This document shows positions 6,284 through 56,117 of a stretch of DNA of 64,000 nucleotides, piece by piece. The position numbers and the translations under genes were made by a program. How positions within the stretch are numbered: the first letter of the stretch is position 1; each line of letters starts with the position of its first letter. Location of the stretch: positions 186,001-250,000 of IMG/VR virus record IMGVR_UViG_3300007513_000001; one strand, 5' to 3'. Below the pieces are notes generated by a model that had not been told where the DNA came from, did not search any database, and worked only from the letters and a program-made list of their open reading frames with translations.

Positions 6284-6369
6284 TTTACTACAGCTTCAGA
6301 TTTAACACCATAAATTTCTGGAGAAGATATTTATTACATAAGTCGTAAAATTGCATGTAGAGAATATTA

Positions 6370-29311: not shown

Positions 29312-29758
29312 ATGGCAAACATAAAAAATCGCTGGAGAACGATGAGTTTAGTTTCTACGCATCTGTGTAAAACTAGCGACGTTGGATTTCATGGAAATCT
29401 TTTTGGAGGTAAGCTTTTAGCTTGGCTCGACGAAGCAGGAGCTGCTTTATCGGCTGAGTTTACAGAGACGGGAAAAATTGTTACGAAACATATTTCAGAA
29501 GTAAACTTTCAAAGCCCTGTCAGGCCAGGCCAGCTTATTAAGATTTATGGAAAGATTTTAAAAGTTGGAAAAACGTCTTTGACGATAGAAGTAGAAGCTA
29601 GGAGACACAGTATTTATAACGGAACGCAAAAACCAGTTTGTAAATGTCAGATGGTTTTTGTTAGAATCGATGGTGATGGAGAGGCTGTGCCTATCCCTCC
29701 CCATATTCACCAAAAATTCGCTCGGCCCATTGAAAGAGGAAATAAAGATGGAAAATAA
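29312..29758 (+). CDS. Hotdog-fold acyl-CoA thioesterase (YciA-like)
   Basis: HGNLFGGKLLAWLDEA, F..PV..G and VGKTS. Confidence 0.85.
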   Translation: MANIKNRWRTMSLVSTHLCKTSDVGFHGNLFGGKLLAWLDEAGAALSAEFTETGKIVTKHISEVNFQSPVRPGQLIKIYGKILKVGKTSLTIEVEARRHSIYNGTQKPVCKCQMVFVRIDGDGEAVPIPPHIHQKFARPIERGNKDGK

Positions 29759-30464
29759 ATCAATAGAGCTTTATGGAGACGGCATTGGCTCTGTAGATTA
29801 TGTCGACCACATGGGTTCCGATCTTACTATTGTCAACAGCGCTCGCGTATCATTTGGCAAGCAAAAAATGACAATGGATAAAAGAGATGAAAAACTTATT
29901 AAGTACCTTATGGAACACAAGCACACCTCAACGATGGAACACAATATTGTTACGTTTCGTTTTACTGTTCCTCTTTACGTTAGGTCTCAGCATCATCGTC
30001 ATAGAACTTGGTCCTATAATGAGATCTCTCGCAGATACACGGATGTAGATATTAGATTTTATGAACCAAAATCTTTTAGAACTCAGCATGAATCAAATCG
30101 ACAAGCGTCTAATACAAAAGAATTAATCAATCCAGAGTTAAATTTGGGCGGCGGCAAATATAAGATGACAGCTGCGGAGGCATCAATCGGACTTCGAAAT
30201 ACTTCACTAGAACTTTTTAATTTATTGATTGAATCTGGTGTTTGCCGAGAACAAGCCAGAGGAATACTCCCGCAAAACATGTACACAGAATACTATGGTA
30301 CTGTCGATCTAAATAATTTGCTTAAATTTGTTGAGCTTAGAACGCATGATGGTGCTCAGTGGGAAATTCAAAAAGTCGCTGAAGCTTGTTTAGATATTGC
30401 TGAAACTCTGTGGCCAATTACTATTAATTGTTACAGAGAAACTAGGGGCAAAACTCATGAATGA
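29748..30464 (+). CDS. thyX: Flavin-dependent thymidylate synthase
   Basis: RHRTWSYNEISRRY signature, ARVSF, EQAR..LP and AQWEI. Start at ATG 29748 with GAGG SD. Confidence 0.95.
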   Translation: MENKSIELYGDGIGSVDYVDHMGSDLTIVNSARVSFGKQKMTMDKRDEKLIKYLMEHKHTSTMEHNIVTFRFTVPLYVRSQHHRHRTWSYNEISRRYTDVDIRFYEPKSFRTQHESNRQASNTKELINPELNLGGGKYKMTAAEASIGLRNTSLELFNLLIESGVCREQARGILPQNMYTEYYGTVDLNNLLKFVELRTHDGAQWEIQKVAEACLDIAETLWPITINCYRETRGKTHE

Positions 30465-31490: not shown

Positions 31491-31513
31491 AGATTATTTG
31501 ATTGTGTTATAAT
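31485..31513 (+). promoter_or_regulatory. Sigma70-like promoter with extended -10, probably leaderless
   Basis: ATGTAA-N17-TATAAT with TG at -15/-14; ATG lies 6 nt downstream. Confidence 0.65.
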
Positions 31514-31519
31514 CAAATA

Positions 31520-38600: not shown

Positions 38601-39265
38601 TTTTGGAAAAACGCCCTTACAAATCGCTTGAAGATATGTTTTGGAGTGAAGATGGAACTTGGAAGCATGCTAAATTCAACAAGAGAGCTATAGAGTCCTT
38701 GATAAAAATTAGAGCTTTTGACTCCCTAGAGTGCGTCGGCCCAGACAAAGATTTTAAGAGTTATGCGCATATGCACTCTGTTGTTATAGAAAACTTTAAC
38801 GAGCTTAGAAAACGTACTAAGAAAGATCCTTATCGTGGAAAAAATAATTTCTTTAAAATTCTTGTAGAGAGCTCTGAAATTTCTGAGTGGTCTTTCGACG
38901 CAATGATGAATTTTGAACAAGAGCTTTTGGGAACCATTAATGTAGAAGCTCTTTTACCAGAAAAATTTGTAAAAAGAATGAATGACAAAAATATTCTTTC
39001 TTTAGATGAACATTGTGGTAGAGAGTTTTACTGGTTTGTTTTAACAAAAGCAATCCCCAAACTCACAAAAAACAAGAAGCCGTACTTACTCTTGAACGGC
39101 ATAGCTTCAACAGGAAAATCTCATAGAATGTTTTGCTGGGGAGTGCCCAAAGATGCTGATTTAGATCCTTTTACTTTTTGCATCGCAGAAGTAGATAAAA
39201 ATGATTTCGGAATGTCTACGAAGTGGAACAGGATCAAAAAATTTAGCTTTAATGATCTTTCTTAA
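35666..39265 (+). CDS. dnaE: DNA polymerase III alpha subunit (family C)
   Basis: PHP motifs HSH..FS..DG, TDHG, GCE, CDSHY; also GPGRGSGAGSLV, FERF, PDIDTD, RHAGG, KFDLLGL and GYGFNKSHA. Confidence 0.96.
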   Translation: MKVPSKFFGLHSHSGFSIFDGLGYPQEHIDFCRENGLDGWSLTDHGHMNGFAHAYLHTEKLNKAGGNFKLIPGCEMYVHPDLDVWKLDYEINKMAKKGDKEALDILKKQREAIQTPLLAFVDEHDETLDVGLEGASLTVENEEETKSGKFYDPIKRRHHLVVLPKTSEGLQRLFHLISRGYTEGFYRFPRVDYKMLKEAAKGGHLMVSTACIGGPLAYDVFQPLQETNFEDLIPSLFDDESLRNKILSKFEYSYDQLADAVGEENVMLELQFNKLPAQHLVNRAILEFARTRSLTDQLVVTCDSHYASPEHWKERELYKKLGWLNYKSFNPDNLPKSKDDLKCELYPKNAQQVWESYLETSAEHDFYNSDEIFEAIERTHDVAHEMIGEIHPDRKMKLPSYVVPEGVTANKALLEASKEGLVKRGLANKPEYVERMKTELKVIFDKNFSEYFLTMKAIIDLAREKMLAGPGRGSGAGSLVNYALYITDIDPVEYGLLFERFMSPERTEMPDIDTDIADRDELIKILRSNFGNKNVIPISNYNTFKIKSLLKDVSRFYGIEFSEVNKTLASLEREVAQGRKADGVDAAFDISFEEAKKYSTKVRDYLEKYPQIADPINVLYKQNKALGRHAGGVIVSEKIEERMPLIVARGEMQTPWVEGMNYKHLEEFGWIKFDLLGLETLRIIERTISLVLEKSGIENPSFEQIVEWYNSHIAPNVIDFNDQKVYENVYHSGRWAGIFQCTQRGAQALFKRAKPVGLVDLATLTSIYRPGPLSAKVDKLYIKAKNNPENVFYGHPLIEQVLNSTYGMIIFQEQVMELCHVVAGFPKAECNKLRKMMKPVGSGNENIKKAAALKNKFVEGASKNGVEKNIASELYDRILYFSGYGFNKSHAVSYAVNSYHCAWFMTYFEQEWIQAYLEACSGNPKKLSKALSEVKALGYKIVPIDINKAGKAWTCIDDNSLMPSFLSCKGVGAAAVEEILEKRPYKSLEDMFWSEDGTWKHAKFNKRAIESLIKIRAFDSLECVGPDKDFKSYAHMHSVVIENFNELRKRTKKDPYRGKNNFFKILVESSEISEWSFDAMMNFEQELLGTINVEALLPEKFVKRMNDKNILSLDEHCGREFYWFVLTKAIPKLTKNKKPYLLLNGIASTGKSHRMFCWGVPKDADLDPFTFCIAEVDKNDFGMSTKWNRIKKFSFNDLS

Positions 39266-39300: not shown

Positions 39301-40146
39301 ATGGTTGAAAACTATATAAATTTAAATCAAGCGTTTGTTGAAGAATTAGTAGACCTCAAATTTAACGGTGAAGAAGTTAAGTCGAGAGGATTCACGCAAA
39401 AAGAAAAATTGTTTTGCTCTTTCATTATAAAAGATCCAACAGATCTAAAGATCAAAGTGCCCGCCCGCAAGTTTAATGAAGATTACGCTGTTTTAGAGTG
39501 GCTTTGGTATCTTACTTCCAATTGCGAAGTAAGCAATATTGGGAAGTTTGCTGATATATGGAATAAAATAGCTGATGAAGATAATTTAGTTGAATCAAAT
39601 TATGGAAGTTATATAAAGCCTGCTTGGTATGATTTAGTAAACGAGCTTCTTAACGATAGAGATACAAGAAGAGCTACTTGCGTAATTAACCAACCTCACC
39701 ATCGATGGAAAAATCCTAACGACTACCCCTGCACTCATTATATTCATTTTTTTATTAGAGGAGATGCTCTTCACTTGGGAGTTTACATGAGATCTAACGA
39801 TGCAGTTTTTGGTTTTTGCAATGACGTTTTTACTTTTGCGTTGTTTCAACAGCTTATGTTAAACGAACTAAATTCTCGTGGTGCTAATTTAAAGCTAGGC
39901 AATTATTACCATTCAGCTGGAAGCTTTCATGTTTATGATCGACATTACGAAATGCTAGAAAAAATCTCAAAAAACTACTTTAAGAAAGCTAGAAAAGAAG
40001 GGTATCCCACATTTGAAAAAATGACTTTAAATCCAGATTTAACTTGGCCAAAAATGGAAAAATTTATATCTTTTTTTGAAGAAAACCTAGACAAAGACGA
40101 AATATCGAGTAAGATTAAAGAGATTAGGGAGATTATCTTTCAATGA
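39301..40146 (+). CDS. Thymidylate-synthase-fold dNMP-modifying enzyme, dCMP hydroxymethylase-like
   Basis: TRRA, catalytic YPCT, MRSNDAVFGFCND and SFHVY. Has Asp at the position of E. coli ThyA Asn177. Confidence 0.85.
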   Translation: MVENYINLNQAFVEELVDLKFNGEEVKSRGFTQKEKLFCSFIIKDPTDLKIKVPARKFNEDYAVLEWLWYLTSNCEVSNIGKFADIWNKIADEDNLVESNYGSYIKPAWYDLVNELLNDRDTRRATCVINQPHHRWKNPNDYPCTHYIHFFIRGDALHLGVYMRSNDAVFGFCNDVFTFALFQQLMLNELNSRGANLKLGNYYHSAGSFHVYDRHYEMLEKISKNYFKKARKEGYPTFEKMTLNPDLTWPKMEKFISFFEENLDKDEISSKIKEIREIIFQ

Positions 40147-40424
40147 ATATTCTTGACGAAGCTAACAAAATTATTAACGAAAGATCTGAAGAAAAAGAAA
40201 GACAATATGGCCCGATGGGCGAAGGCTTAGAGCGCGCTGCAATGATTGCTTCTGGGATGACTGGAAAAGATTTTACTGCCGACGATATTTTTGCTGCTTT
40301 AGTAGCTCTTAAGTTTTCGAGGCACTCATACAATTATAAAGAAGATAATTTTTTAGATGCCGCAGCTTATCTGGGCGCGTGGAATAACTACATTCAAAAG
40401 GGTTTGAAAAATGAAAATAAGTAA
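40143..40424 (+). CDS. Small all-alpha protein (DUF6378 / NTP-pyrophosphohydrolase-like)
   Basis: IL.EA..II..R....YG and LK.SR.......D...D...Y pattern. Confidence 0.6.
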   Translation: MNILDEANKIINERSEEKERQYGPMGEGLERAAMIASGMTGKDFTADDIFAALVALKFSRHSYNYKEDNFLDAAAYLGAWNNYIQKGLKNENK

Positions 40425-40845
40425 AGTAAGAAGTGTTAAAACTCCAACTCGAGGAACTCCTGAATCTGCAGGCATAGATTTTTATGTTCCGCAAGGAATG
40501 GTTGTTAGCTTACCTCCGGGTTATTCTTGTTTGATGCCAAGCGGAATAAAGGCTAATGTTCCAGCAGGCCATGCTTTAATTGCATTTAACAAGAGTGGCG
40601 TAGCTGTAAAAAAGAATCTCCACGTCGGCGCATGCGTTGTTGATGAAGATTATCAAGGAGAGATCCATATTAACTTGATCAATGTTGGCAGAGAAACAGT
40701 GAAAATTTCTTCTGGAGAAAAAATTATACAATTTGTTTTACTTCCAGTATTTTATGACACAATTGAAGAAGTAGAACTAGAAAATCTTTATGAACAACAA
40801 ACCCAGCGCGGCGAAGGCGGATTTGGAAGTACGGGAGTTGAGTGA
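40411..40845 (+). CDS. dut: Trimeric dUTPase
   Basis: SAGIDF, KSG, VDEDYQGEI, IIQFV and RGEGGFGSTG. Confidence 0.93.
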   Translation: MKISKVRSVKTPTRGTPESAGIDFYVPQGMVVSLPPGYSCLMPSGIKANVPAGHALIAFNKSGVAVKKNLHVGACVVDEDYQGEIHINLINVGRETVKISSGEKIIQFVLLPVFYDTIEEVELENLYEQQTQRGEGGFGSTGVE

Positions 40846-41900
40846 TGAATTATTTTGTAGATTATGAATTACCAAAAAGTTGCAAAATCGGTATTGATGG
40901 ATTAGAGCGCAATATTCCAACTCGTAAACATAGTCACAACGCGGCTTGGGTTCATTTGTATAAAAACATGCTTCAATCTGCCGGCTGGGAAGACGTTCAC
41001 GTCTTGGGAAATCATGATACTTACGAAGGCTATGAAGCCATGATTTTTTATCCTGGAATTGCTTATTCGGGAGCCATTAATTTCTTTTTTGGAGTGGATG
41101 ATAATGTCGTTAGAAGATTTTCTAGAGTTCAAGACTTTGAAGGCCCGACATTTATTTTAAATCATGAAATGCCCCTTATCGGAAACACGATCAAAGGAAG
41201 ACTTCATAATAAATCTACTAGTAGTCGAGTTGGAAACCTTAAGCTAGACTTGTTAGACGATATCTGCAAGTCTACTCGTAGAATCGACTATGTAGAAAGA
41301 TCGAAAAAACTTTGTTTTGGAGACAGCCACTGCTTCTCAACTTATGCCCCCGGGTATTCTGTTTGTCGAAACGATGGTCTTACACTTTTTTCTACTTTAC
41401 GAAATGGAGTGAAGCAAACCATTGAAGAAAAATCGGGTATGATGACTAAAGATTTAACTCATCTTACGTTTTATATGGGTAATATTGATATTCGACATCA
41501 CCTCATGAGACAAGAAAACCCTTTTGAAAAAGCCCATGCAATGGGAATAGAATTGGGATACCAGCTTAAATCTTTAGGCATTCCAAACATAGAAATTGTT
41601 CACGTTCTTCCAATTGAAAATATTTCTCGAAAACTTCCAAAAACTGGCTACTATAAGAAGACTCCATATTTTGGAACTTGGGAAGAAAGAACCAAACTAG
41701 TCAATACATTTAACAACGCTGTGGATAAAATTTGTATAGAAAACAAATGGAATACTTTCCATTGGCCCGAAGAGTTTTTAAATGATTCTAAAGAGTTGGA
41801 TTTTGAATATATGGAGCGTCCAAAAAGTGTTCATTTAAGCCCAGTTTCTTATAGGTGGGATCTTTTTGAAAATAAATTAAATAGCTTGCATAGTAGCTAA
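40842..41900 (+). CDS. Conserved phage protein with an SGNH/GDSL-like C-terminal domain
   Basis: FGDSH (block I), G..L (block II), YMGNIDIRHH (block III) and SVHL (block V). Confidence 0.55.
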   Translation: MMNYFVDYELPKSCKIGIDGLERNIPTRKHSHNAAWVHLYKNMLQSAGWEDVHVLGNHDTYEGYEAMIFYPGIAYSGAINFFFGVDDNVVRRFSRVQDFEGPTFILNHEMPLIGNTIKGRLHNKSTSSRVGNLKLDLLDDICKSTRRIDYVERSKKLCFGDSHCFSTYAPGYSVCRNDGLTLFSTLRNGVKQTIEEKSGMMTKDLTHLTFYMGNIDIRHHLMRQENPFEKAHAMGIELGYQLKSLGIPNIEIVHVLPIENISRKLPKTGYYKKTPYFGTWEERTKLVNTFNNAVDKICIENKWNTFHWPEEFLNDSKELDFEYMERPKSVHLSPVSYRWDLFENKLNSLHSS

Positions 41901-41914
41901 AAATGGAGAAAAAT

Positions 41915-43105
41915 ATGCCAAAAAATAAATCAATTCGAGTTGCAATTGTCGGTGTCGGAAATTGCGCTAATTCTTTCTATCAAGGATTAACATATTATGC
42001 TGGATACACCGAAGGCCAAGAGCGCGACGGCGTTATGAAGAGCCGAATCGGAGGATATTCAGTAGCTGACCTCGATGTTGTAGCTGCGTTTGATATAGAC
42101 AAAAGAAAAGTCGGCAAGTGTTTTAGAGAAGCTATGTGGGCTAAACCAAACTGTACTCCAGAATATGAACCTAATGTTCCCGATGGTCCAATAGTTCAGA
42201 TGGGCCCAGTGTTAGATGGGGTACCGTCTTTGATGAAATCTTATCCAGACGATGAAGCTTTTAGACCAGCTGATTTAGAGCCCGTAGATGTGGCTCAGAT
42301 ATTAACAGACTTAAAGGTGGATATTCTAATCAACTATCTACCAGTGGGTTCTCAGAAGGCTACTGAGTGGTATGCAGAACAGTGTCTAAAGACGGGAGTT
42401 TCTCTTCTTAACTGTATTCCAGTCTTTATTGCTTCTAATCCAATTTGGGAACAGAAGTTTATTGATGCTGGAATTCCTTTGGTTGGGGACGATATGAAAT
42501 CTCAGTTTGGGGCGTCTATTTTATCTCAAATGCTGCAAGAATTAGCTTTCGCCCGAGGACTAAATGTGAATGCTCATATTCAGCGTAATGTTGGTGGAAA
42601 TACTGATTTCTTGAATATGGTCGATCAATCTAGGTTAAAGTATAAAAAGGTTTCTAAGGAAAATGTAATTCGATCTCAGCATGTTATCAGGGGAGTTGAT
42701 CCAGAAGAATCATTCTTACATGCTGGCCCTTCAGAATATATTCGTTTTTATGGAGATAACAAGGTTGCCAATTTTAGAGTAGAGATGGAAGGTTTCCTCG
42801 GCGCACCAGTAATTCTAGACGCGCAACTTTCCGTAATCGACTCTCCAAACTCTGGTGGAGTTGTTATCGACGCGGCTCGATATCTAAAGGTTGCGAGAGA
42901 AATGGGGATTGTTGGAGCTTTGCGTGGGCCATCTGCCTTTACGCAAAAAACCCCGCCCCAACAATTAATGTTTTCAGAAACTCTTTACGAATGCGACGCT
43001 CTTTCAGAGAGAAAGCTTACTAGATTTACAAAGAGGCAAACTCAAAATTACAGTGCGGAAGAGTTGTATCAATCTTGCCCAGCAGGAAACAAGGAAGTAG
43101 ATTAA
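41915..43105 (+). CDS. ino1: Myo-inositol-1-phosphate synthase (bacterial/archaeal type)
   Basis: VAIVGVGNCA, AFDID.RKVG, NYLPVGS, GDD.KSQ.GA, NVGGNTDFLNM, YGDNK and DSPNSGGVVIDA. Confidence 0.95.
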   Translation: MPKNKSIRVAIVGVGNCANSFYQGLTYYAGYTEGQERDGVMKSRIGGYSVADLDVVAAFDIDKRKVGKCFREAMWAKPNCTPEYEPNVPDGPIVQMGPVLDGVPSLMKSYPDDEAFRPADLEPVDVAQILTDLKVDILINYLPVGSQKATEWYAEQCLKTGVSLLNCIPVFIASNPIWEQKFIDAGIPLVGDDMKSQFGASILSQMLQELAFARGLNVNAHIQRNVGGNTDFLNMVDQSRLKYKKVSKENVIRSQHVIRGVDPEESFLHAGPSEYIRFYGDNKVANFRVEMEGFLGAPVILDAQLSVIDSPNSGGVVIDAARYLKVAREMGIVGALRGPSAFTQKTPPQQLMFSETLYECDALSERKLTRFTKRQTQNYSAEELYQSCPAGNKEVD

Positions 43106-43106
43106 A

Positions 43107-43823
43107 ATGCCGAAAATCCACGAGCAAAAAGGGAAATTATTTAATCCTGAAGCTGGAAATTTTGAAGAATGCATTATTAAACTAAACCCTCGTAATAACT
43201 TTTGGTATCGTCCTGGCACTTTTGATCTTAATTCTATTAGAGAGTGCCGAGACAACTATAGTGAAATAGACACTTGCGGAAAAGTTGTTCTAGATCTGGG
43301 TGCCAATATTGGCGGTTTTGCTCGGATGGCTCTTCAAAAGGGCGCGAAACAAGTTATTGCTCTAGAGCCGTGCCCATATAATTTTCAACTGCTAGAGATT
43401 AATGCTGAAAATGCTGAAAACATAAATGCAGCAGTTTCAGAAGAAGATACTGATAGCGTTGTTTTTCATTATGCTAGTTCTAAAAGAAATTCTGTTTCTT
43501 CTTCTACGGTTCGACGCAGAAACGCTTCGGGAACCACTATTTCAGTCCCAGGCCTTTCTTTTGGAGGGCTATTAGAGAAATATAAGCCTGAAATTCTTAA
43601 AATTGATATCGAAGGAAAAGAGTATGATATTTTAGATTCGATTAAAGAGATACCAGATTTTGTAGAAGTTGTTGGTATTGAATTTCACAATACTCGAAAA
43701 CCATATTCGGAATATCCTTCTCGTTTTTTTCCAGAATCTACTTGGAAAAAAGTAGAGCACCCTATTTTGATGTACGGACAGAAAAAGGTTTTAGATTACA
43801 CATTTTATCGCAAAGTTGTTTAG
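43107..43823 (+). CDS. FkbM-family SAM-dependent (O-)methyltransferase
   Basis: VLDLGANIG, ALEP...NF..L..N and LKIDIEG.EY....EFH. Confidence 0.88.
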   Translation: MPKIHEQKGKLFNPEAGNFEECIIKLNPRNNFWYRPGTFDLNSIRECRDNYSEIDTCGKVVLDLGANIGGFARMALQKGAKQVIALEPCPYNFQLLEINAENAENINAAVSEEDTDSVVFHYASSKRNSVSSSTVRRRNASGTTISVPGLSFGGLLEKYKPEILKIDIEGKEYDILDSIKEIPDFVEVVGIEFHNTRKPYSEYPSRFFPESTWKKVEHPILMYGQKKVLDYTFYRKVV

Positions 43824-43832
43824 GAGAAAATA

Positions 43833-44249
43833 ATGGTTGTTAATGGTTTTGATATTGACGGAGTGATTCACCTTGGAGATAGTGTCTGTGGAATCCGCCC
43901 TGGTCCTGGTGATGTGATTATTACCGGTCGAAGTTTTGAGGAAGAGGCCGAAACTCTAGCTTTTCTTCGTCGTAATGGAATTAATAATCCAGTATTTTTT
44001 AACCAGTGTCATTATGATGAAAAAACTCGTGAAGGTTCTGGTTGGCACAAAGGCGAAACTATTAAGTTGTTGCATCGAGCTGGCCTCAGCATTCGATATT
44101 TTTTCGAAGACGATGAAGTTCAAAAAGCCGAAATTGAAAGAATTTTAGCAGAAAAAGAAATCTGGAATATGCCAACCAAAGTAATTCACGTTAACAATCC
44201 ACATGTAGCGAAAGAGAATAGACGTCACTTAGAGGATTTACATGAGTAA
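43833..44249 (+). CDS. Capless HAD phosphatase
   Basis: GFDIDGVI, IITGRS, HK and FFEDD. Confidence 0.85.
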   Translation: MVVNGFDIDGVIHLGDSVCGIRPGPGDVIITGRSFEEEAETLAFLRRNGINNPVFFNQCHYDEKTREGSGWHKGETIKLLHRAGLSIRYFFEDDEVQKAEIERILAEKEIWNMPTKVIHVNNPHVAKENRRHLEDLHE

Positions 44250-45687
44250 TTCTGAGCTTCTTAAAATGACTGATAAGCAGCTTTTTGATGAAATTCCCTC
44301 TCATAAAAAGCAAGATTTTATAGACTTTATAAAAGAGCTTAATCGAAGAGAGTATTTAGTTAGATTTGCAAAATCGTGCACCTTTGAAAGCTTTCAGCAT
44401 TTACCTGGTACTTCTTTTAAATTTGGTAATGGTTTTATCGTAAATGGAAAATCAGTCCCTTATTTCCACCCCAATCGTAGCTTTCATGATGAAATTATTT
44501 GGTTGAATGAAAATCTTTTCTACAACCCTCATGCTACTTTTGAAGACAAGCTCATCAACGCAGCGATTGTAAAGTTTTATGGGCCATCTAACACTTTGAA
44601 GCTTATTGCTAGCGGAACAGGAAAGAATTTTGTAGATTATAAACGATTCATAGGAGACGCTAAGTATCTTCAACAAGTTTGTGTAAATTTGGAAACAGCT
44701 GTGAAAAATAAAGAGAAGATATACGGAACCACAGAACTAAGAACAAGCCTACAAACTGCTGCTCGAAACTACGCAAGAGACGTTGGTTCTCCAATAGATA
44801 AACTTGAATTAATTCCGTTGGTAGATAGAAAAGTTAGATCATGTCGACCTTCTGATATTCTTTTTTGGTTTACTAAGATCGGTCCAGATTTTGTAAATTT
44901 TTATAAGAAGACTCCAAACATGGAAGAGTCTTTCAAGTTTTTAAATTCTTTTAGAGGGATTGGAAATTATTATGGTTATCATTTTAGTTGCAATCTTGCT
45001 CGTATGCCCTCCGTTGGAAATTTAATATTCAAGGGTACCCCTGGCAAAATCGATGAAGATGATGAATATGTTGTTCCGGGTGTTGGAGCGATGTCTGCGA
45101 TAAATTGGTTTTATGAACACCGCGGCCACTCTATAAACACAAAAGTTGGAAAAAAATTAATAAACGCTATTCGCGAACACCAAAATGATTTCTTCGATTT
45201 AAAGAAATCTGACAATTCTAAATTTTATATGGAAAAAGTTTCTGAGCTTGGGTATTTTACTAATTTCGGCTGTGAAATATCTTGCTGCCAGTTCGGAGTT
45301 TATCGAAGATTAAGAGAAGATAAAAAATTAGCTTTAAGAAGAGCAGCTGCACCAATTTCAAAAGAGGAAGTCAAAATGATTCTTACGCCAAAAACCCTAA
45401 TGCAAAAACTGGGTCTTATTTCAGAAGATAAGCCTTCTGAAGAACACATCCAAACCACCAATCCCGCTTTAGATTTTTCTTCTACAAGCAAAGAAGATTT
45501 AATTCTTGCTATTGTCGATGAATCTGGAGGAGCTTGTTCACATTCTGCAGTGGCAAAAATGATAGAAGAAAAGGGATATACTCAATATAAACAGTCTGGA
45601 AGCTGGAAAGAAAGCTGGGTAATAATGAGAGAATTAGTTAAAAAGGGTGCTCTAGTTAAAGATGGAAAATTTTATCGGAGGTCGTAA
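44242..45687 (+). CDS. aGPT-Pplase / amino acid:DNA transferase-like protein (HhH glycosylase fold) with a C-terminal wHTH-like tail
   Basis: GIGNYYGYH...NL (HhH), VVPGVGA..AI and EISCCQF..Y, matching the family G.G.f.a / GpGa / E...Ce..ky pattern. Confidence 0.65.
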   Translation: MSNSELLKMTDKQLFDEIPSHKKQDFIDFIKELNRREYLVRFAKSCTFESFQHLPGTSFKFGNGFIVNGKSVPYFHPNRSFHDEIIWLNENLFYNPHATFEDKLINAAIVKFYGPSNTLKLIASGTGKNFVDYKRFIGDAKYLQQVCVNLETAVKNKEKIYGTTELRTSLQTAARNYARDVGSPIDKLELIPLVDRKVRSCRPSDILFWFTKIGPDFVNFYKKTPNMEESFKFLNSFRGIGNYYGYHFSCNLARMPSVGNLIFKGTPGKIDEDDEYVVPGVGAMSAINWFYEHRGHSINTKVGKKLINAIREHQNDFFDLKKSDNSKFYMEKVSELGYFTNFGCEISCCQFGVYRRLREDKKLALRRAAAPISKEEVKMILTPKTLMQKLGLISEDKPSEEHIQTTNPALDFSSTSKEDLILAIVDESGGACSHSAVAKMIEEKGYTQYKQSGSWKESWVIMRELVKKGALVKDGKFYRRS

Positions 45688-46865
45688 TGCAAAACGTGAG
45701 GTGGGGAACTATCATTCCCCTTATTGGGGGTAGCGCTATAGGGTGCTCTCAAGCCACTAAAAATAAGCCAGAATTTCATCTTAGTTATTCTGCTTTTGGC
45801 GCTAACGAAAAGTATTTAACCGATTATTGGAAAGACGTACCTCGTATAGTTTTAGATGAAGGTGGAGAAATCCCAAATCAGCAAATTGATTTTATCAACT
45901 CAGTTTGTCCATGCGCGGGTTTAAGTCAGCTTAATACTTCTAGAAGCAAAGATATGCGTGAATCTAAAAATTACTGGATGTACGAATCCGCTCAAAGGAT
46001 AATGGGAGAACTTAAACCGAGAGTTTACTGGGGAGAAAATGCTCCCGGCCTTTTTACTAATTCGGGTGCGTACGTACGTGACAAGCTTAAAACCCTGGCC
46101 AAAGAACATGGTTATTCCTTTTCTCTTTATAAAACTGATACTCAAAAACATGGAATACCACAGCGAAGAGTAAGAACTTTTTATTTTTTTTGGAGAGATA
46201 CTAATCCGCCTATTTTAAATTATTTTGATCAAACTCCTGTCCCTTTTGCAGAGTACATCAAAGAGATACCAGATACAGCAACTTTACAAGATCAGTTTAA
46301 TATTGCGGGAAAAATTTCTGACAATTTTGATTCTTACGCTTTCGTTCTTCAGAAGTTGAAAATAACCCACAGAGAATTCGTGAAATCTAATGATTCCGGG
46401 TCTATTCATTCAATTTTTTCTTACCTTGCTGAAAATGAACTTTTAAAAGAGTGCATAGACTGGATAGAAAAAAACAAAAATGAAGAAACAGCTGAACACA
46501 GAAGATTGAAAGCTATTTATAAAAAAGTTCAATCTGGTGGGAGATTTATGGATGCTTCTCCGGGGTATTATTATGCTAGAACTAACGCTATAGTGGGAAG
46601 GACTTTAACGCATTTAGTTCACCCCACTGAAGATCGCGGCATGTCTATTCGAGAGCTGCTTCATATGATGGGGCTGCCTCATGACTTTGAAATGAGCGAT
46701 AGAAAATCCTTGAATGTAATAGCGCAGAACGTTCCTACGTGTACAGCCCGAGATATGGCTACTCAAGTTATTGAATACTTAAACGGTGGTTTACAAATTG
46801 CAGAAAACAGTTTTTTAATGCAAAATAACTTAAAACAGGAGACCACGTTATGCGAGCCCTTGTAA
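45687..46865 (+). CDS. DNA cytosine-C5 methyltransferase-fold protein with an atypical motif I
   Basis: Motif IV CPCAGLS, VI ENAP, VIII PQRRVR, IX R.MS.RE...MGLP and X AQNVP. Motif I reads IPLIGG instead of FxGxGG. Confidence 0.85.
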   Translation: MQNVRWGTIIPLIGGSAIGCSQATKNKPEFHLSYSAFGANEKYLTDYWKDVPRIVLDEGGEIPNQQIDFINSVCPCAGLSQLNTSRSKDMRESKNYWMYESAQRIMGELKPRVYWGENAPGLFTNSGAYVRDKLKTLAKEHGYSFSLYKTDTQKHGIPQRRVRTFYFFWRDTNPPILNYFDQTPVPFAEYIKEIPDTATLQDQFNIAGKISDNFDSYAFVLQKLKITHREFVKSNDSGSIHSIFSYLAENELLKECIDWIEKNKNEETAEHRRLKAIYKKVQSGGRFMDASPGYYYARTNAIVGRTLTHLVHPTEDRGMSIRELLHMMGLPHDFEMSDRKSLNVIAQNVPTCTARDMATQVIEYLNGGLQIAENSFLMQNNLKQETTLCEPL

Positions 46866-47836
46866 CTGGAGGTTGCGGATTTATTGGATCATGCATCTCT
46901 AAAAAATTAGTAGATTCAGGATGGGATGTTGAGATAGTTGACGATATGTCTAATGGGAATTATGAGTTTTTAGATGGCTATCGCATAAGATCAGTTCCGG
47001 TTCAGCTTGGTGAAAGTTTTGAAAACCAAGTCAAAAAGCAAGAACATCAAATTTTAGTTTTGGTTGGAGATTTTACTAGCTACGAAGTCGTTAGAAGAAT
47101 TGTGGAAAAAAAATATGATGTAATATTTCATTGCGCAGCCAATCCACGCGTAGAATACTCAGTTCAAAACCCTGTTGAAACAACAGACGAAAATCTAACT
47201 AAAACAATTAAGCTTTTTACTCACTCTATTGGAAACGTCAAAAGGATAGTGTTTTCCTCTAGTTGTTCAATATACGGTGATCCGTGGACTCTTCCTACTA
47301 CAGAATCTCACGGAAAAAATCCAAATAGTCCATACGCGCTTCAAAAGCTTTGTGTCGAAGAGTTTGCGCGACTGTATTCTAAAACTTATGATTTAGACAT
47401 AGCTTGTTTGCGATACTTCAATGTTTATGGCCCTTATCAATATGGAGGGTCTCCATATTCTACAGCTATCGTATCTTGGTGTGACAAAGTAAAAAATGGT
47501 TTACCGCTTCGCAGTGATGGTGATGGAACGCAGTCTAGAGATATGGTTTTTGTAGAAGACGTTGCGAGAGCAAATATTTTAGCTGCGACTCATAAAGAAA
47601 ACTTTAGTGGAAAATGCATTAATATTGGAACTGGAGCTTCTTATACTAATAATCAAATTTTAGATATTTTTAAGTCTAAGTTTCCCGACATAGAAATTAG
47701 TCATGCACCAGAAAGATCCGGAGACGTAAAACACACTCAGGCATGCACAAAAGAAGCAAGGAATTTTTTAGGATTCAGAACTGAATATTCTTTAGAAGAA
47801 GGTCTAGAAAAAACTTTTGACTGGTGGGAGATTTGA
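46850..47836 (+). CDS. NAD-dependent NDP-sugar epimerase/dehydratase
   Basis: GGCGFIG, FSSS...YG, YALQK, LRYFNVYGP and GDG.Q.RD. Confidence 0.92.
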   Translation: MRALVTGGCGFIGSCISKKLVDSGWDVEIVDDMSNGNYEFLDGYRIRSVPVQLGESFENQVKKQEHQILVLVGDFTSYEVVRRIVEKKYDVIFHCAANPRVEYSVQNPVETTDENLTKTIKLFTHSIGNVKRIVFSSSCSIYGDPWTLPTTESHGKNPNSPYALQKLCVEEFARLYSKTYDLDIACLRYFNVYGPYQYGGSPYSTAIVSWCDKVKNGLPLRSDGDGTQSRDMVFVEDVARANILAATHKENFSGKCINIGTGASYTNNQILDIFKSKFPDIEISHAPERSGDVKHTQACTKEARNFLGFRTEYSLEEGLEKTFDWWEI

Positions 47837-48428: not shown

Positions 48429-48869
48429 TTGAAGGATATTTTAACATTGTCAGACAAACACCACAAATCATCTTGGAAGTCTAGATCTTCTCTTGCTGTT
48501 ACCCCATGGGGATCTGAGATCCGATGGGCTGCAACTGCCGGAGTAAATGGAAAATGCCTCAGCATTAACAAGGGCATGAGAACAAGCTTAAAATACTATA
48601 AGTTAAAAGACGAAGTTCTTTTTCTTTACAAGGGGAAGATTTTAGTAACTCACGGAGATGAAAAAACTATAACGCATCCAGAAACACATCCATATGTTCA
48701 ATCTATTCTTGCGCCTGGAGAAATGGTAATAGTGCAGAGCCATTGCCCTTACAGGATTGAAGCTTTAGAAGATTCTGAAGTTATTGAAATAGGCTCTCGA
48801 GGTCCAGGCGACACAGTCATGCTGGAGGATGATTTCGGGAGAGCAGATAAAGCAGATAAGGAGCTTTAA
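48429..48869 (+). CDS. Cupin (mannose-6-phosphate-isomerase type II C-terminal-like); start uncertain
   Basis: PWG.E, TSL..Y..K.E, RI.A.EDS...E and EDDFGR. Confidence 0.7.
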   Translation: MKDILTLSDKHHKSSWKSRSSLAVTPWGSEIRWAATAGVNGKCLSINKGMRTSLKYYKLKDEVLFLYKGKILVTHGDEKTITHPETHPYVQSILAPGEMVIVQSHCPYRIEALEDSEVIEIGSRGPGDTVMLEDDFGRADKADKEL

Positions 48870-49775
48870 ATGACAGTAACTGACCCATCTTCAGTCAATG
48901 TAGTGATATATCACGCAGACTGCACTGACGGATTCGGAGCTGCATACGCAGCTTGGAAACTACTTGGAAATAGAGCTGAATATCATGCATGTAAACATGG
49001 TAAACCACCGCCAGACGTAAAAGGAAAAGTTGTTGCTATTTTAGATTTTTCTTATGACAATGCTACAACTAAACGAATGATAGAAGACGCGGAAGGGCTG
49101 ATCATCATCGATCATCATAAGTCAGCAGTCGTAGAATTGCACGATATCAGTAATGCTATTTTTGATATGGCTCATTCTGGAACAGTTCTTTCTTGGAACT
49201 TTTTTCACCCGGGAAAAGAATCTCCTAAGTTTTTGACTTATATTGAAGATCGCGATCTTTGGAAGTGGGAACTCCCATATTCAAAAGAATTTAGTGCAGC
49301 ATTTGATATGGTTCCATTTGAATTCGAGGAATTTGAAAAATTTGAAGACGATTCTGTATTCGATGACGCTGTAAAACGAGGTTCTTACATTTTGGCGTAT
49401 TCAAAAACTGTTGTAAAGAAAGTTTGTGAAAAAGCTGAGCCGAGAAAGTTTGAAGGTAAGGATGTACTAGTCGTCAATGCGTCTCACTGGATGTCAGAGA
49501 TTGGAGCTCGTCTTTCTCCAGACTGCGATTTTGCGATGATCTGGTATTGGGATCACGTTGCGCAGCACACTAAAGTTTCTCTAAGAGCTTTTCATGAAAC
49601 TGTGGACGTTTCTGAAATTTCTAAAAAGTTCGGTGGCGGCGGCCACAAAAAAGCAGCTGGATTTCAGCTTTCCAAAAGTAAGCATGTTGAAGATTTATTT
49701 GATAAGCCGAAAACAACTAGAAAAAAATCTACTAAATCTTCAGCTAAAACTGTAAAGAAAACGGAGACTTCTTGA
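48870..49775 (+). CDS. DHH/DHHA1 phosphoesterase
   Basis: YH.DC.DG, DHH, EDRDLW, SLR and GGGGH..AAG. Confidence 0.9.
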   Translation: MTVTDPSSVNVVIYHADCTDGFGAAYAAWKLLGNRAEYHACKHGKPPPDVKGKVVAILDFSYDNATTKRMIEDAEGLIIIDHHKSAVVELHDISNAIFDMAHSGTVLSWNFFHPGKESPKFLTYIEDRDLWKWELPYSKEFSAAFDMVPFEFEEFEKFEDDSVFDDAVKRGSYILAYSKTVVKKVCEKAEPRKFEGKDVLVVNASHWMSEIGARLSPDCDFAMIWYWDHVAQHTKVSLRAFHETVDVSEISKKFGGGGHKKAAGFQLSKSKHVEDLFDKPKTTRKKSTKSSAKTVKKTETS

Positions 49776-50173
49776 GACCGTCGTGGGATAAAATATGGAT
49801 GGATTTCGCAAGCTCAATCGCTGAGAGATCTTACGACCCAAGATTTCAAGTGGGCGCTGTTATTATTACTGAAGACAACAGCCAAGTTTTAGCTGTTGGA
49901 TATAACGGAAATTACGCTGGAGGTCCCAATGAAGTAGAATCAGAAACCCCTGGGGAATCTGGCATGCTTCATGCTGAAATTAATGCATTACTTAAAATGG
50001 ATTACAACAACCCTAAAAAGAAAAAGCTTTATCTAACTCTTTCTCCTTGTAGAATGTGCGCAAAGGCTATAATTAATAGCGGAATTAATGAAGTAGTTTA
50101 TGCTGAATCTTATAGGGACCTATCGGGGATAGAACTTTTAAAAGAATGTGGCATATCTGTAAGACACGTTTGA
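49772..50173 (+). CDS. dCMP deaminase
   Basis: VGAVI, GYNG, HAE.NA and SPC.MC. Confidence 0.92.
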   Translation: MRPSWDKIWMDFASSIAERSYDPRFQVGAVIITEDNSQVLAVGYNGNYAGGPNEVESETPGESGMLHAEINALLKMDYNNPKKKKLYLTLSPCRMCAKAIINSGINEVVYAESYRDLSGIELLKECGISVRHV

Positions 50174-51621: not shown

Positions 51622-51979
51622 TAAATTAGCTAATCGTCTCTTGCACGCAAGATATAAACAGCGGCTTCTTGAAGCGATATCAGAGGTAGATGTTGTAGAC
51701 GATCAAGGAAATATTATTATTGCTAAAGACTTAAAAGTTCGCCATAAAGATTCTGGTTACGAATATACGGTAGACGATGTAGTTGATGACGCCGGCGCAA
51801 TTAGTGTAGTTTTAAGAGAACCTTCAGAGCCCAGGTTTGAGCCGGCTGGCTCCGAAGCGCTATTGGGCTCTCCGCCAAACCAACAGCTTGATCTAAACGA
51901 AGACGACGCTGCCGAAGAAGAAGAGGTAGTTTTTATAGTAGACCAGGCAGAATTTGAAAAGGAGTACGAAGTCAAATGA
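51611..51979 (+). CDS. Hypothetical acidic protein
   Basis: Overlapping operon gene. Confidence 0.6.
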   Translation: MKIDKLANRLLHARYKQRLLEAISEVDVVDDQGNIIIAKDLKVRHKDSGYEYTVDDVVDDAGAISVVLREPSEPRFEPAGSEALLGSPPNQQLDLNEDDAAEEEEVVFIVDQAEFEKEYEVK

Positions 51980-54542: not shown

Positions 54543-56117
54543 ATGTCCTATTCTTTAAAAGACGTTTACGGTTTTAATAAAAAGAAATCTAACCCTAAAA
54601 AAGTCCGCGCAAGAGATGTTGCTAAGCTAATACTCAGAGAAGCTATTTTAATAGAACAAGAAGAATTAGCGAAACAAGTTCAGTCTGCTGGTGGAAAGCC
54701 TATTACTCTTGTTGTTCTTTATGGACCACCAGCGGCCGGAAAGGGAGCTGCGAAAAAAGATATAGGTACTTTCATAGGAGCTTCTGGCGAGAAAGATTTT
54801 GAGAAATGGCTAGAAGACATTGGAGACGAAGGAAACAAGCATTTCCAAGAAGAAGATGCCGCCATGGTAAATATAACTACAAAGCAAATGGCACCTGCAG
54901 TGTATGGAGAAATTTCTAAGAGAGTCTCTGCCGGAGAAAATTTTGACGACGTAGTTCAAGAATATTTTCATGTAAATGAATCTGGCAAAAAGTTTTCAGT
55001 TGCTGATATTTTAAGCAAATCAGCTTTCGATAAACTTGAAAAGTCTGGAGGCGCAGAAGAATTTGCAAATTTCCCTCAAACCCAGGCATTCTTTACACAA
55101 GCTAGAGGTTTTTCTAAGCCTGTTGAGGGTTTATCTGACGACGTTAATAAAATGATGGGCCCAAGTGACGATTCACCCACACTTGGCATTCGAGCAGCCG
55201 CCGCTGGCAGATACATGAAAGATGTAAAATCGGAACTTCAGGGAATGTTAAGCACTGAAGAAATCGGATCTACTCCCTATGCCACAGTCTATTTAGCGGA
55301 TCAAGCTGGAGAGTCTACAGCTGATACAGCTAGAATTGCAGCTCTTGGAAAAATGAAAGAAGATCCAGAATTTGACGCTCTTAAAATAATCGGTGTATAT
55401 ATTCATCAACCAGCTGAAAGAACAAGGATAGCCAATCTTCATAGAGCATCTACTGGCGGCCGCCGAGTTGCTCAAAAAGAAGTTGACCGTATCTTTAAAG
55501 CGGGTCCAGAGATCGGAGCTGATGGAAACCTTGTAAATAAAGGAGCTGCTCTCGAAGCAATGGAAGGCGCTGGATTTGATCAAATTCACTTATACCACCC
55601 GCCAGACCCATTTGATCCTGAGGGAGTTGAAGTTAATGGGCGCCCAATAGGTAATGCTATTTGCGAACCTCTTGGATCCGGCAAGGGCCACTTAGATATC
55701 GAGGGCTGTGATCAGGAATCTGAGGGATCAGCGACAGGCGCAAAATCATTGAAGGGGATGGAAAAATACGCAGTTAAGCAAGCTAAAATTCCTGATGAAG
55801 AAGTTGAAGCAGCCGGTGGCGGAATTCCCGAAGATTTAGAAGCTGAAGAAAAAGAAAAGATAATTGCTGCTTTTAACAAAATGGGCTTCAGCGGAGTTTC
55901 AAGTGGAGATTTAGACAGCTACCTTACTACTTTAGCACCACCCAACGTAAGAGGTGCTTCTAAGCATGGAAAAGTCCCGTGGGCTGGTGATTTATTTGGA
56001 AAAGGAACAAATCCAACTGAGAAAATCACGCTTAAAGGAGAAAATGCCAGAAGTCAAAAGACTCAAGACGATGTTCTTCTTGAAAGGTGGCAACGCCTCG
56101 CGGGTTTACTTAAGTAG
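54543..56117 (+). CDS. P-loop kinase (zeta-toxin/AAA_33-like)
   Basis: VVLYGPPAAGKG Walker A and N..R...GGR.V lid motif; C-terminal RWQRLAGL. Confidence 0.6.
   Translation: MSYSLKDVYGFNKKKSNPKKVRARDVAKLILREAILIEQEELAKQVQSAGGKPITLVVLYGPPAAGKGAAKKDIGTFIGASGEKDFEKWLEDIGDEGNKHFQEEDAAMVNITTKQMAPAVYGEISKRVSAGENFDDVVQEYFHVNESGKKFSVADILSKSAFDKLEKSGGAEEFANFPQTQAFFTQARGFSKPVEGLSDDVNKMMGPSDDSPTLGIRAAAAGRYMKDVKSELQGMLSTEEIGSTPYATVYLADQAGESTADTARIAALGKMKEDPEFDALKIIGVYIHQPAERTRIANLHRASTGGRRVAQKEVDRIFKAGPEIGADGNLVNKGAALEAMEGAGFDQIHLYHPPDPFDPEGVEVNGRPIGNAICEPLGSGKGHLDIEGCDQESEGSATGAKSLKGMEKYAVKQAKIPDEEVEAAGGGIPEDLEAEEKEKIIAAFNKMGFSGVSSGDLDSYLTTLAPPNVRGASKHGKVPWAGDLFGKGTNPTEKITLKGENARSQKTQDDVLLERWQRLAGLLK

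Follow-up and report, generated by a model that had tools for sequence, protein, structure and literature searches.

The closest characterised relatives of the enzyme examined here are the aGPT-Pplase clade 2 or amino-acid:DNA transferases (Pfam PF18724, ADDT), which include PaMx11 gp46 (PDB 8z2m), M6 gp51, ViI gp247, PhiW-14 gp109 and SH-Ab 15599 Pplase2. They have a helical, DNA-glycosylase-like fold with a helix-hairpin-helix (HhH) motif, and all characterised HhH-fold DNA group transferases act on kinase-activated 5-hydroxymethyluracil (5-hmU). The substrate of this clade, 5-PmdU, is made by a partner 5-hmdU DNA kinase (PF18748) from a 5-hmdU precursor supplied by a dUMP hydroxymethylase. 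In PaMx11 gp46, a 5-PmdU glycinyltransferase, E243, T244 and C247 form the active site, T244 being a metal ligand (PMC11472151), and the Glu and Cys of the Glu-x3-Cys motif are the residues shown to be essential or in the active site (PMC8989533; PMC11472151). A second family, PF18723 (HMUDK_hel), comprises the stand-alone M6 gp55 and the C-terminal domain of the SP10 gp186 5-hmdU DNA kinase. PF18723 proteins have no demonstrated function, and M6 gp55 was dispensable for transfer in vitro (PMC8989533). Meanwhile, all characterised decorations of hydroxylated cytosines are glycosylations by GT-fold enzymes, such as the T4 alpha- and beta-glucosyltransferases and the RB69/DLP3 arabinosyltransferases.

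We analysed a window of 64,000 nucleotides (positions 186,001 to 250,000) of the jumbo-phage record IMGVR_UViG_3300007513_000001, together with the complete genome of 293,409 bp. An earlier note, made from the sequence alone, had described a divergent aGPT-Pplase-like transferase with altered HhH-type motifs, an extra C-terminal domain resembling a winged helix and no partner kinase in the operon. This observation was confirmed. An ATG-started ORF of 481 aa (P0001) runs at 44242..45687 on the + strand and overlaps the stop of the upstream gene by 8 nt. At least 159 homologues were found, with identities from 89% down to about 41% in the listed hits, which is far more than chance, and IMG/VR gave 80 loci, the most distant of which was about 25% identical.

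To determine which family the protein belongs to, we compared it with Pfam profiles. The only hit was PF18723 (30.4 bits against a gathering cut-off of 25, E 3.4e-7, aa 91-357; 32.2 bits for aa 80-380 alone), and most homologues carry the precomputed PF18723 label. The match is weak, as M6 gp55 itself scores 190 bits, and it covers profile positions 57-274 only. The target gave no PF18724 hit even at E<=10, an hhalign comparison of the 39-member alignment with M6 gp51 gave no alignment, and a profile of the same alignment searched against all PDB sequences gave 0 hits, including 8z2m. Thus the nearest sequence family is the uncharacterised PF18723 clade and not the proven transferases, which corrects the note, and the link to clade 2 rests on fold and motif only.

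The fold was examined using an AlphaFold model (mean pLDDT 89). The catalytic helical core, shared by the whole family, corresponds to aa 1-380 (44242..45381, +), and its best match among solved structures was PaMx11 gp46 (8z2m_A; Z 10.0, rmsd 4.7, 233 of 287 residues, model aa 23-382). It should be noted that a Z of 10 is modest for a helical protein and that a Foldseek search of the PDB found nothing at E<=1e-3. The nearest Atlas cluster was HMUDK_hel (TM 0.72). Residues of about 413-481 (45478..45684, +), joined to the core by a low-confidence linker (aa ~380-412), fold in the model as helix-strand-helix-helix-strand-strand and match winged-helix proteins, namely MecI (Z 10.8, rmsd 1.7, 65 aligned), Fur (Z 10.1), Z-alpha (Z 8.9) and PadR. 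This domain occurs only in the nearer relatives, whereas most family members end at about residue 380-420.

The structures of Qng1/DUF2419, a queuosine-5'-monophosphate hydrolase (PDB 7ugk, 7u07), were near-equal matches (Z 9.4 and 8.8 over about 220-245 residues; model aa 3-361), and weak Foldseek rows at E about 1 included the glycosylases AlkA, Mag1 and MutY. This raises the possibility that P0001 is a glycosylase or nucleoside hydrolase that excises or salvages a base, the sugar-phosphate genes beside it being unrelated auxiliary metabolic genes. We consider this unlikely, since there is no Pfam HhH-GPD (PF00730) or DUF2419 hit, the conserved Cys-Glu dyad is the transferase signature, and the linkage to the neighbouring genes described below persists across unrelated phage backbones (jumbo, T4-like and polB-type), which is hard to explain by chance.

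The alignment of 39 members, whose pairwise identity to the target goes down to 42%, has about 80 invariant columns. In the HhH-like hairpin motif GIGNYYGYH (aa 239-247; 44956..44982, +), G239, I240 and Y243-H247 are invariant, and hhalign places this motif on the GWGPFMAYE block of M6 gp55; an AGPGA block is aligned as well. In the motif EISCCQFGVY (aa 345-354; 45274..45303, +), E345, I346, C349 and Q350 are invariant. E345 and C349, the putative catalytic dyad, align with E291 and C295 of M6 gp55. This is the only E-x3-C in the protein and, judged from the sequence, it sits at the C-terminal position equivalent to that of the single E-x3-C in M6 gp51 (E243/C247), SP10 gp186 (E587/C591) and Aeromonas phage 31 ORF233c (E749/C753). 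SP10 gp186 even shares the Cys-Cys pair. Compared with the E..lCE..KY motif of PF18723, E, C and Y are kept, but the Glu after the Cys is Gln and the Lys is Val. The Thr that follows the Glu in PaMx11 gp46 is replaced by the invariant I346.

The note had left open that a kinase is encoded elsewhere. To test this, the complete genome was searched with the kinase profile PF18748, which gave no match at E<=1; no PF18724 match was found either. The Walker-A ORFs outside the window are AAA_5, an XPD-like helicase, PrkA and PhoH-PIN, plus two chance motif matches in a glycosyltransferase and a sugar dehydratase. Those inside the window are RecA, a DnaB-like helicase, thymidine kinase, chance matches in large proteins and in the target itself, and one 524-aa protein (54543..56117) with no Pfam match; the Walker-A proteins that could be annotated are unrelated to the kinase. 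No conserved P-loop protein sits in the cassette across 83 related loci, and a 248-aa Walker-A protein conserved about 7 kb downstream in the polB-type phages is not HMUDK-like. The kinase encoded elsewhere therefore finds no support in the complete genome.

Next, we examined the precursor base. The sole ThyA-family homologue of the genome (P0244; 39301..40146, +) matches PF00303 (3.6e-16) but scores far below the thymidylate synthase equivalog cut-offs. It has D-Y-P-C, R-S-N-D and N-D, aligned to C148/D179 of T4 gp42, and carries the cytosine/hydroxymethyl signature (L143D, D169 kept, N177D), which is the 5hmdCMP-synthase signature given in PMC13326640. The ThyA homologues beside the cassette in related loci all carry RSND plus Asp at the Asn177 position, and Asp at the Leu143 position wherever the catalytic-Cys context could be read, while the SPO1 and SP10 dUMP hydroxymethylases have Asn at the Asn177 position, which discriminates uracil from cytosine. 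A ThyX (29658..30464, +; PF02511 1.6e-46 at genome 215802-216416, window 29802-30416) would make dTMP separately. Therefore P0244 is a predicted dCMP hydroxymethylase and 5-hydroxymethylcytosine (5-hmC) is the likely substrate, although the note had framed the gene against 5-hmU pathways. However, a tblastn search of this genome found no homologue of a T4-like dCTPase, nor of other accessory genes from related loci, so complete replacement of cytosine is not established. A canonical thymidine hypermodification pathway, with P0001 acting on phosphorylated 5-hmU and the kinase encoded elsewhere or supplied by an unrecognised kinase, could be suggested by the characterised members of the superfamily and by a dUTPase (40411..40845, +; PF00692 2.5e-25; TIGR00576 111.5 bits, above cut-off) and a dCMP/cytidine deaminase-family protein (49772..50173, +; PF00383 4e-23; near the cassette in 13 groups) in the operon. 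Given the kinase searches, the Asp residue and ThyX, we regard it as very unlikely.

The gene belongs to a conserved cassette, which the note had missed apart from a suspected link to an SGNH-like protein. Presence of each gene was counted among the 41 related loci with full flanks. The SGNH partner P0003 (352 aa; 40842..41900, +) is present in 41 of 41. It consists of an N-terminal alpha/beta domain and a predicted SGNH/GDSL-hydrolase-fold domain (aa ~150-352; model pLDDT 90, Foldseek GDSL esterases with probability 1.0, 2hsj Z 12.2), and G160-D-S-H163, N214 and H331 are invariant. P0003 matches the N-terminal half of phrog_17781 (E 2e-48) and the target its C-terminal half (E 7e-91), and the two proteins are fused in the T4-like Aeromonas phages 31 and 44RR2.8t. 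A prediction of the complex between P0001(1-380) and P0003 returned no answer (score 0.00), which is no evidence either way. An inositol-3-phosphate (myo-inositol-1-phosphate) synthase homologue (41903..43105, +) is present in 40 of 41 loci (PF01658 7.5e-22; TIGR03450 1.6e-96, below its equivalog cut-off; PDB 1gr0, M. tuberculosis Ino1, 1.4e-88; 6k96, a five-membered cyclitol-phosphate synthase, 5.8e-48). An FkbM-family methyltransferase (43107..43823, +; PF05050 1.2e-14; TIGR01444 1.2e-22) is present in 28 of 41 loci and in 11 of 19 groups. A 720-aa apparent fusion of FkbM with the target (P0080) translates only with TGA=W; it was not counted as a fusion and no alternative code was adopted.

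The 138-aa protein P0002 (43833..44249, +), translationally coupled to the target, is present in 38 of 41 loci. Because of a PHROG hit annotated as polynucleotide kinase, we first considered it as the missing kinase, but it has no Walker A, and its family (phrog_415 hit) conserves D.DGV, IITGR, SG.HK and EDD, which are HAD motifs I-IV. It was therefore assigned as a minimal HAD-type phosphatase. The one locus without the synthase, that of 44RR2.8t, belongs to a phage in which searches of the whole genome found neither the synthase nor the HAD gene, and in its close relative phage 31 a Na+/solute (SSF) symporter gene sits next to the fusion gene. The same synthase and HAD pair is embedded in an unrelated DNA-modification cluster in Stenotrophomonas phage Mendera, where the adjacent gp042 is unrelated to the target and carries a DSGGLQ motif that, in our reading, is reminiscent of TGT/DpdA enzymes.

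Other neighbours are a DUF6378 protein of 93 aa without assigned function (40143..40424, +; PF19905 2.7e-11; 30 of 41 loci), a divergent C5-cytosine DNA methyltransferase-like protein (P0245; 45687..46865, +; PF00145 3.1e-19; IGG, CPC, ENA and QRRVR motifs; 13 of 41 loci, 8 groups), which would be odd if all cytosine were replaced, and a GalE-like NAD-dependent sugar epimerase/dehydratase (46850..47836, +; PF01370 2.8e-48; TIGR01179 174 bits, below cut-off), linked only in the nearest phage groups (4 groups). As the genes lie among nucleotide-metabolism genes and Qng1 acts on a mononucleotide, the cassette might instead modify a nucleotide pool or a non-DNA target before replication, for example making a modified dCMP derivative or an inositol-containing metabolite. 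This is improbable, since the HhH motif and the winged helix point to a DNA substrate and every characterised relative acts on polymeric DNA.

We propose, with a probability of about one half, that P0001 is a post-replicative DNA base-modifying enzyme of the aGPT-Pplase/HMUDK_hel superfamily, representing a distinct, uncharacterised clade that works without a nucleobase kinase. In this view, the phage would incorporate 5-hmC made by its ThyA-like dCMP hydroxymethylase, and P0001 would bind DNA through its HhH core, helped by the winged helix, and flip out the base. Cys349 would add to C6 while Glu345 activates the ring, and the C5-CH2-OH oxygen would leave, either directly or after activation by P0003, giving an exocyclic methylene to which a small hydroxylated nucleophile, probably a cyclitol, would then add. 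The synthase and the HAD phosphatase would make a cyclitol and FkbM would O-methylate it, while in Aeromonas phages the symporter would import the substrate instead; the synthase and phosphatase could, however, serve another purpose. The homology, the predicted fold, the conserved dyad, the gene linkage and fusion, the absence of the kinase and the ThyA signature were shown by the analysis. Meanwhile, in the absence of biochemical or DNA-composition data for any member, the substrate base, the enzymatic activity with its covalent mechanism, the role of the SGNH protein and the identity of the attached group are inferred. The interpretation given in the note was thus partly supported: the superfamily, the winged helix, the lack of a kinase and, strongly, the link to the SGNH-like protein held, while acylation by that protein or a phosphorylated donor, which it suggested as activation chemistry, remain conjectures.

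A less likely alternative is that P0001 is not itself a group transferase but a DNA-recognition and base-flipping module, like the helical domain fused to the kinase in SP10 gp186, which would present the modified base to the SGNH-fold enzyme (and perhaps to FkbM) for the chemistry, such as O-acylation of 5-hmC. The definition of PF18723 as the helical domain of a kinase, the dispensability of M6 gp55, the fusion, the invariant SGNH catalytic residues and the winged helix, which adds DNA binding, would fit this. On the other hand, the invariance of Glu345, Cys349 and about 80 other positions is unusual for a pure binding module, and the dyad is the catalytic pair of the proven transferases.

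More tentatively still, a widespread family of aquatic phages (jumbo, T4-like and polB-type) would replace cytosine by 5-hmC and attach a carbocyclic polyol (myo-inositol or an O-methyl-inositol, possibly through an inositol-phosphate intermediate) to the C5-methylene by means of a Cys-dependent HhH-fold transferase, an SGNH-fold partner and no nucleobase kinase. That would be the first cyclitol-bearing DNA base and the first aGPT-Pplase-type chemistry on cytosine. Literature searches found no description of this cassette or of inositol on phage DNA. The family points to a third route of decoration, which would be directed at cytosine, need no kinase and work with an SGNH-fold protein, and its dedicated donor-supply module suggests a chemically new DNA adduct. 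Such modifications shape resistance to restriction, CRISPR and other nucleases and yield enzymes for DNA labelling. The fused form is carried by cultured Aeromonas phages (44RR2.8t, 31 and relatives), and T4-derived or PCR-made 5-hmC DNA is an available substrate.

Compared with the clade 2 transferases, P0001 shares the predicted fold, the single Glu-x3-Cys near the C-terminal end of the core and a phage pyrimidine-hypermodification context next to a ThyA-like hydroxymethylase. It differs in the lack of a sequence-level match, a core about 100 aa longer, the winged helix, the Ile in place of the metal-ligand Thr, the missing kinase, the probable 5-hmC precursor and neighbours that suggest a polyol rather than an amine or amino-acid donor. 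With PF18723 it shares the aligned sequence blocks, but in the loci examined it is linked to the SGNH-fold protein and not to the P-loop kinase. Qng1 is comparable in structure only: no sequence relationship was detected, its substrate class is different, and it lacks the E-x3-C context and any phage hypermodification setting. With the T4 and RB69/DLP3 enzymes, P0001 would share the predicted biological role, the post-replicative decoration of a hydroxylated cytosine made by a ThyA homologue; Aeromonas phage 44RR2.8t carries gene 42, and its relative phage 31 carries the fused enzyme between motA and nrdC.10. The predicted fold and the proposed chemistry are entirely different, as the model is all-helical plus a winged helix with no GT-A or GT-B fold or other glycosyltransferase match, there is no NDP-sugar pathway in the conserved core, and an ether or other C5-methylene substitution is proposed rather than glycosyl transfer to the hydroxyl.

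The window covers bases 186001-250000 of a complete 293,409-bp phage genome with direct terminal repeats taken from IMG/VR. The genes located from about 35.6 kb to 54 kb all lie on the + strand, mostly abutting or overlapping each other, and encode a Pol III alpha-type polymerase followed by nucleotide-metabolism genes. The polymerase gene (window 35666-39265), located just upstream of the modification genes of this jumbo phage, codes for a bacterial-type DNA polymerase III alpha subunit with PHP, NTPase, finger and HHH_6 domains. In spite of the surrounding nucleotide-metabolism genes, a nucleotide-level or non-DNA role of the protein studied here was considered unlikely.

The ORF at 44242..45687 encodes a protein of 481 aa (P0001), and its ATG overlaps the stop of the upstream gene by 8 nt. 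The motif EISCCQFGVY pointed out in the earlier note corresponds to residues 345-354. A word-index search revealed at least 159 homologues, listed from 89% down to about 41% identity; most of them are about 380-430 aa in length, a subset is 480-570 aa, and a few are about 790-805 aa. In an alignment of 39 sequences (A1), about 80 positions are invariant, including E345, I346, C349, Q350 and a GIG.YYGYH hairpin block. Therefore, the gene is real and under strong constraint, and the observation made in the earlier note holds.

To assign P0001 to a family, the protein was compared with Pfam. The only match, even at E<=10, was PF18723 HMUDK_hel (E 3.4e-7, 30.4 bits against a cut-off of 25, aa 91-357), and no aGPT-Pplase2/ADDT match appeared. 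The scanning of reference proteins clarified what these families are. M6 gp51, the proven glycine:DNA transferase, is PF18724 ADDT, M6 gp54 is the P-loop kinase PF18748, the stand-alone M6 gp55 is PF18723 (8e-56), and SP10 gp186 is PF18748 plus PF18723. As M6 gp55 was not needed for transfer in vitro (PMC8989533), the closest named family of P0001 has no established activity.

An AlphaFold model built from A1 had a mean pLDDT of 89.2. A Foldseek search with this model found nothing significant in the PDB. Meanwhile, an exhaustive structural alignment placed three entries as the only multi-hundred-residue matches to the core, namely PaMx11 gp46/PUGT (8z2m, a 5-PmdU glycinyltransferase) at Z 10.0 with 233 residues aligned, and the Qng1/DUF2419 entries 7ugk and 7u07 at Z 9.4 and 8.8. 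It should be noted that these Z values are modest for helical proteins, and we rely on them only together with the Pfam hit and the motif. In spite of the resemblance to Qng1, we consider it improbable that P0001 is a glycosylase or hydrolase. Residues about 410-481 matched winged-helix domains at Z 8-11. The nearest structural cluster in the ESM Atlas was a viral 'HMUDK_hel' cluster (TM 0.72).

In PaMx11 gp46, the flipped thymine is held by Cys247, while Glu243 and Thr244 bind the metal (PMC11472151), and mutation of the conserved Cys or Glu inactivates M6 gp51 and ViI gp247 (PMC8989533). To find out whether these residues are kept, we examined the E-x3-C motifs of the related proteins. M6 gp51 (E243/C247), M6 gp55 (E291/C295), SP10 gp186 (E587/C591), Aeromonas phage 31 ORF233c (E749/C753) and P0001 (E345/C349) each have exactly one such motif, located about 30-45 residues before the end of the helical core. 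The alignment with hhalign placed FGCEISCCQFGVYRR of P0001 on RDIEHTLCEFDKYER of gp55, and the AGPGA and hairpin blocks were aligned as well. The earlier note had described the motif as altered, and this is correct, as E, C and Y are kept while E becomes Q and K becomes V. The Thr metal ligand is Ile in P0001.

We then searched for the kinase that the earlier note had not recognised in the operon. The profiles PF18748 and PF18724 gave no match at E<=1 in the complete genome. The Walker-A ORFs outside the window are AAA_5, an XPD-like helicase, PrkA and PhoH-PIN, plus two chance motif matches in a glycosyltransferase and a sugar dehydratase. Within the genome (G000:C1, positions 67052-68992, 88396-89253 and 93565-94602, outside the window), the jumbo phage encodes a PrkA-type AAA/kinase protein, a family-9 glycosyltransferase and a Polysacc_synt_2 sugar dehydratase. 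Inside the window, the Walker-A matches fall in RecA, a DnaB-like helicase, thymidine kinase, several large proteins and P0001 itself by chance, and one 524-aa protein (54543..56117) that has no Pfam match. The 138-aa protein encoded just upstream of P0001 has a PHROG 'polynucleotide kinase' hit, but it is a minimal HAD phosphatase, as its family conserves D.DGV, IITGR, SG.HK and EDD. A canonical 5-hmU pathway with a hidden kinase was thus considered the least likely of the alternatives.

To determine which base is the likely substrate, we analyzed the genes for pyrimidine synthesis. The genome has one ThyA-family gene (P0244, window 39301-40146) and also a ThyX (window 29658-30464). P0244 scores far below the thymidylate-synthase equivalog cut-offs. 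When aligned with T4 gp42, 44RR2.8t gp42 and the SPO1 and SP10 dUMP hydroxymethylases, P0244 has FGFCND where T4 has FGFRND (D179), while the dUMP enzymes have Asn at that position. According to PMC13326640, N177D marks dCMP as the substrate, L143D/E marks a hydroxymethyl product, and D169N marks 5-hydroxy-dCMP synthases. P0244 has D-Y-P-C (L143D), R-S-N-D (D169 kept) and N177D, which is the 5hmdCMP-synthase signature. Every non-canonical ThyA homologue located beside the cassette in other phages keeps RSND and has Asp at the N177 position, and Asp at the L143 position is seen wherever the catalytic-Cys context could be read. These results indicate that the likely substrate is 5-hmC, not 5-hmU, although P0244 remains a predicted dCMP hydroxymethylase. 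No dCTPase was recognised in the genome, which bears on how far cytosine would be replaced. In the polB-type phage group, the gene directly downstream of the P0001 homologue (locus L003, 11243-11710) codes for an NTP pyrophosphohydrolase (phrog_173, 1.3e-13; 36 loci), a candidate dCTPase. Taken together, the interpretation offered in the earlier note was partly supported.

The profile of PHROG 17781 is 795 aa long; its N-terminal half matches the ORF 40842..41900 of the window (P0003) and its C-terminal half matches P0001. This fusion is real in Aeromonas phages 31 and 44RR2.8t (ORF233c, 795 aa). P0003 has no Pfam match and at least 513 homologues. It was modelled with pLDDT 90 as an N-terminal alpha/beta domain plus an SGNH/GDSL-hydrolase domain (Foldseek prob 1.0; 2hsj Z 12.2), and G-D-S-H160-163, N214 and H331 are invariant. 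It is possible, though rather doubtful, that P0001 is a non-catalytic base-flipping module for this SGNH enzyme. A 720-aa 'FkbM methyltransferase-P0001' fusion on record (locus L006, 7685-9847) translates only if TGA is read as Trp; it is probably two adjacent genes or a gene-calling artefact and was not counted as a fusion.

For the examination of gene neighbourhoods, we collected 83 loci with P0001 homologues, forming 28 groups at 80% identity and coming from jumbo, T4-like and polB-type phage backbones. The neighbours were counted in the 41 loci having at least 5 kb upstream and 3 kb downstream, which form 19 groups. The SGNH-fold protein was present in 41 of these 41 full-flank loci, the inositol-3-phosphate synthase homologue in 40, the HAD phosphatase in 38, DUF6378 in 30, the FkbM methyltransferase in 28, the ThyA homologue in 16 and the C5-methyltransferase-like protein in 13. 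No P-loop family is conserved in the cassette. The synthase is closest to M. tuberculosis Ino1 (1gr0, 1.4e-88), and next is a five-membered cyclitol-phosphate synthase (6k96). In one T4-like locus (L005, 8895-9368), a nucleoside 2-deoxyribosyltransferase-like protein (PF15891) sits between the synthase and HAD genes of the cassette.

In the genome studied here, a divergent C5-cytosine methyltransferase-like protein with IGG, CPC, ENA and QRRVR motifs (window 45687-46865) is encoded immediately downstream of P0001. It recurs near the cassette in 8-11 phage groups, its role in a phage that probably replaces C by 5-hmC being unexplained. The cassette is followed by a small cupin ('cysteine dioxygenase' PHROG), a DHH/DHHA1 phosphoesterase and a protein with an Fe/Mn superoxide dismutase C-terminal domain (window 48429-49775 and 51976-52662), of which the cupin and the DHH protein are conserved only in the nearest relatives. 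In addition, a sulfotransferase-domain protein (PF00685 7e-08) is encoded next to an Fpg/Nei-type DNA glycosylase (window 31502-32329 and 32338-33144), and both are unusual phage genes.

Aeromonas phage 44RR2.8t (complete genome) is an informative exception, as it has the fusion but no synthase or HAD gene anywhere. In its close relative phage 31 (NC_007022), the gene immediately upstream of the fusion (6286-7809) codes for a Na+/solute symporter (PF00474 7e-53; the best NCBIfam equivalog is of the YidK type, 265 bits, below its cut-off). Import appears to replace synthesis there. Conversely, in Stenotrophomonas phage Mendera (NC_048804, 7101-12627), the inositol-1-phosphate synthase and a 123-aa HAD-like protein (E 3e-44 to the family profile of P0002, the upstream HAD phosphatase) lie between a GTP cyclohydrolase (FolE) and QueC-like and QueE-like genes, without the P0001 homologue or the SGNH protein. 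Next to them is a 403-aa protein carrying a DSGGLQ motif like that of TGT/DpdA enzymes. This looks like a 7-deazaguanine DNA-modification cluster with the same synthase and HAD pair embedded. Sixteen Stenotrophomonas, two Caulobacter and one Ralstonia phage records carry this synthase. Both observations fit a portable 'donor supply' sub-module serving DNA-modification systems, although this remains an inference.

A literature search revealed no description of this cassette, and among 50,697 phage records only Aeromonas Biquartavirus-type phages carry a recognisable P0001 homologue. By analogy with the clade-2 enzymes, we propose that Cys349 adds to C6 of a flipped 5-hmC and Glu345 activates the ring, the C5-CH2-O group then departs to give an exocyclic methylene, and a nucleophile is added. 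Without a kinase, the hydroxyl may leave directly, as C5-methyltransferases can couple nucleophiles to 5-hmC without activation in vitro, or it may leave after transient activation by the SGNH partner. The cyclitol that would be made by the synthase and phosphatase, possibly O-methylated by FkbM, is the most economical candidate for the group that is added. While the conservation and gene linkage described here rest on direct comparison of sequences, none of these steps is shown by our analysis and each of them, including catalysis by P0001, is inferred. Compared with phage M6, in which the transferase gp51 belongs to PF18724 and the kinase gp54 to PF18748, the genome studied here combines a PF18723 protein that keeps the E-x3-C motif of gp51 with the lack of a match to either of these two families, and if the cyclitol adduct is real, it is a new DNA chemistry.
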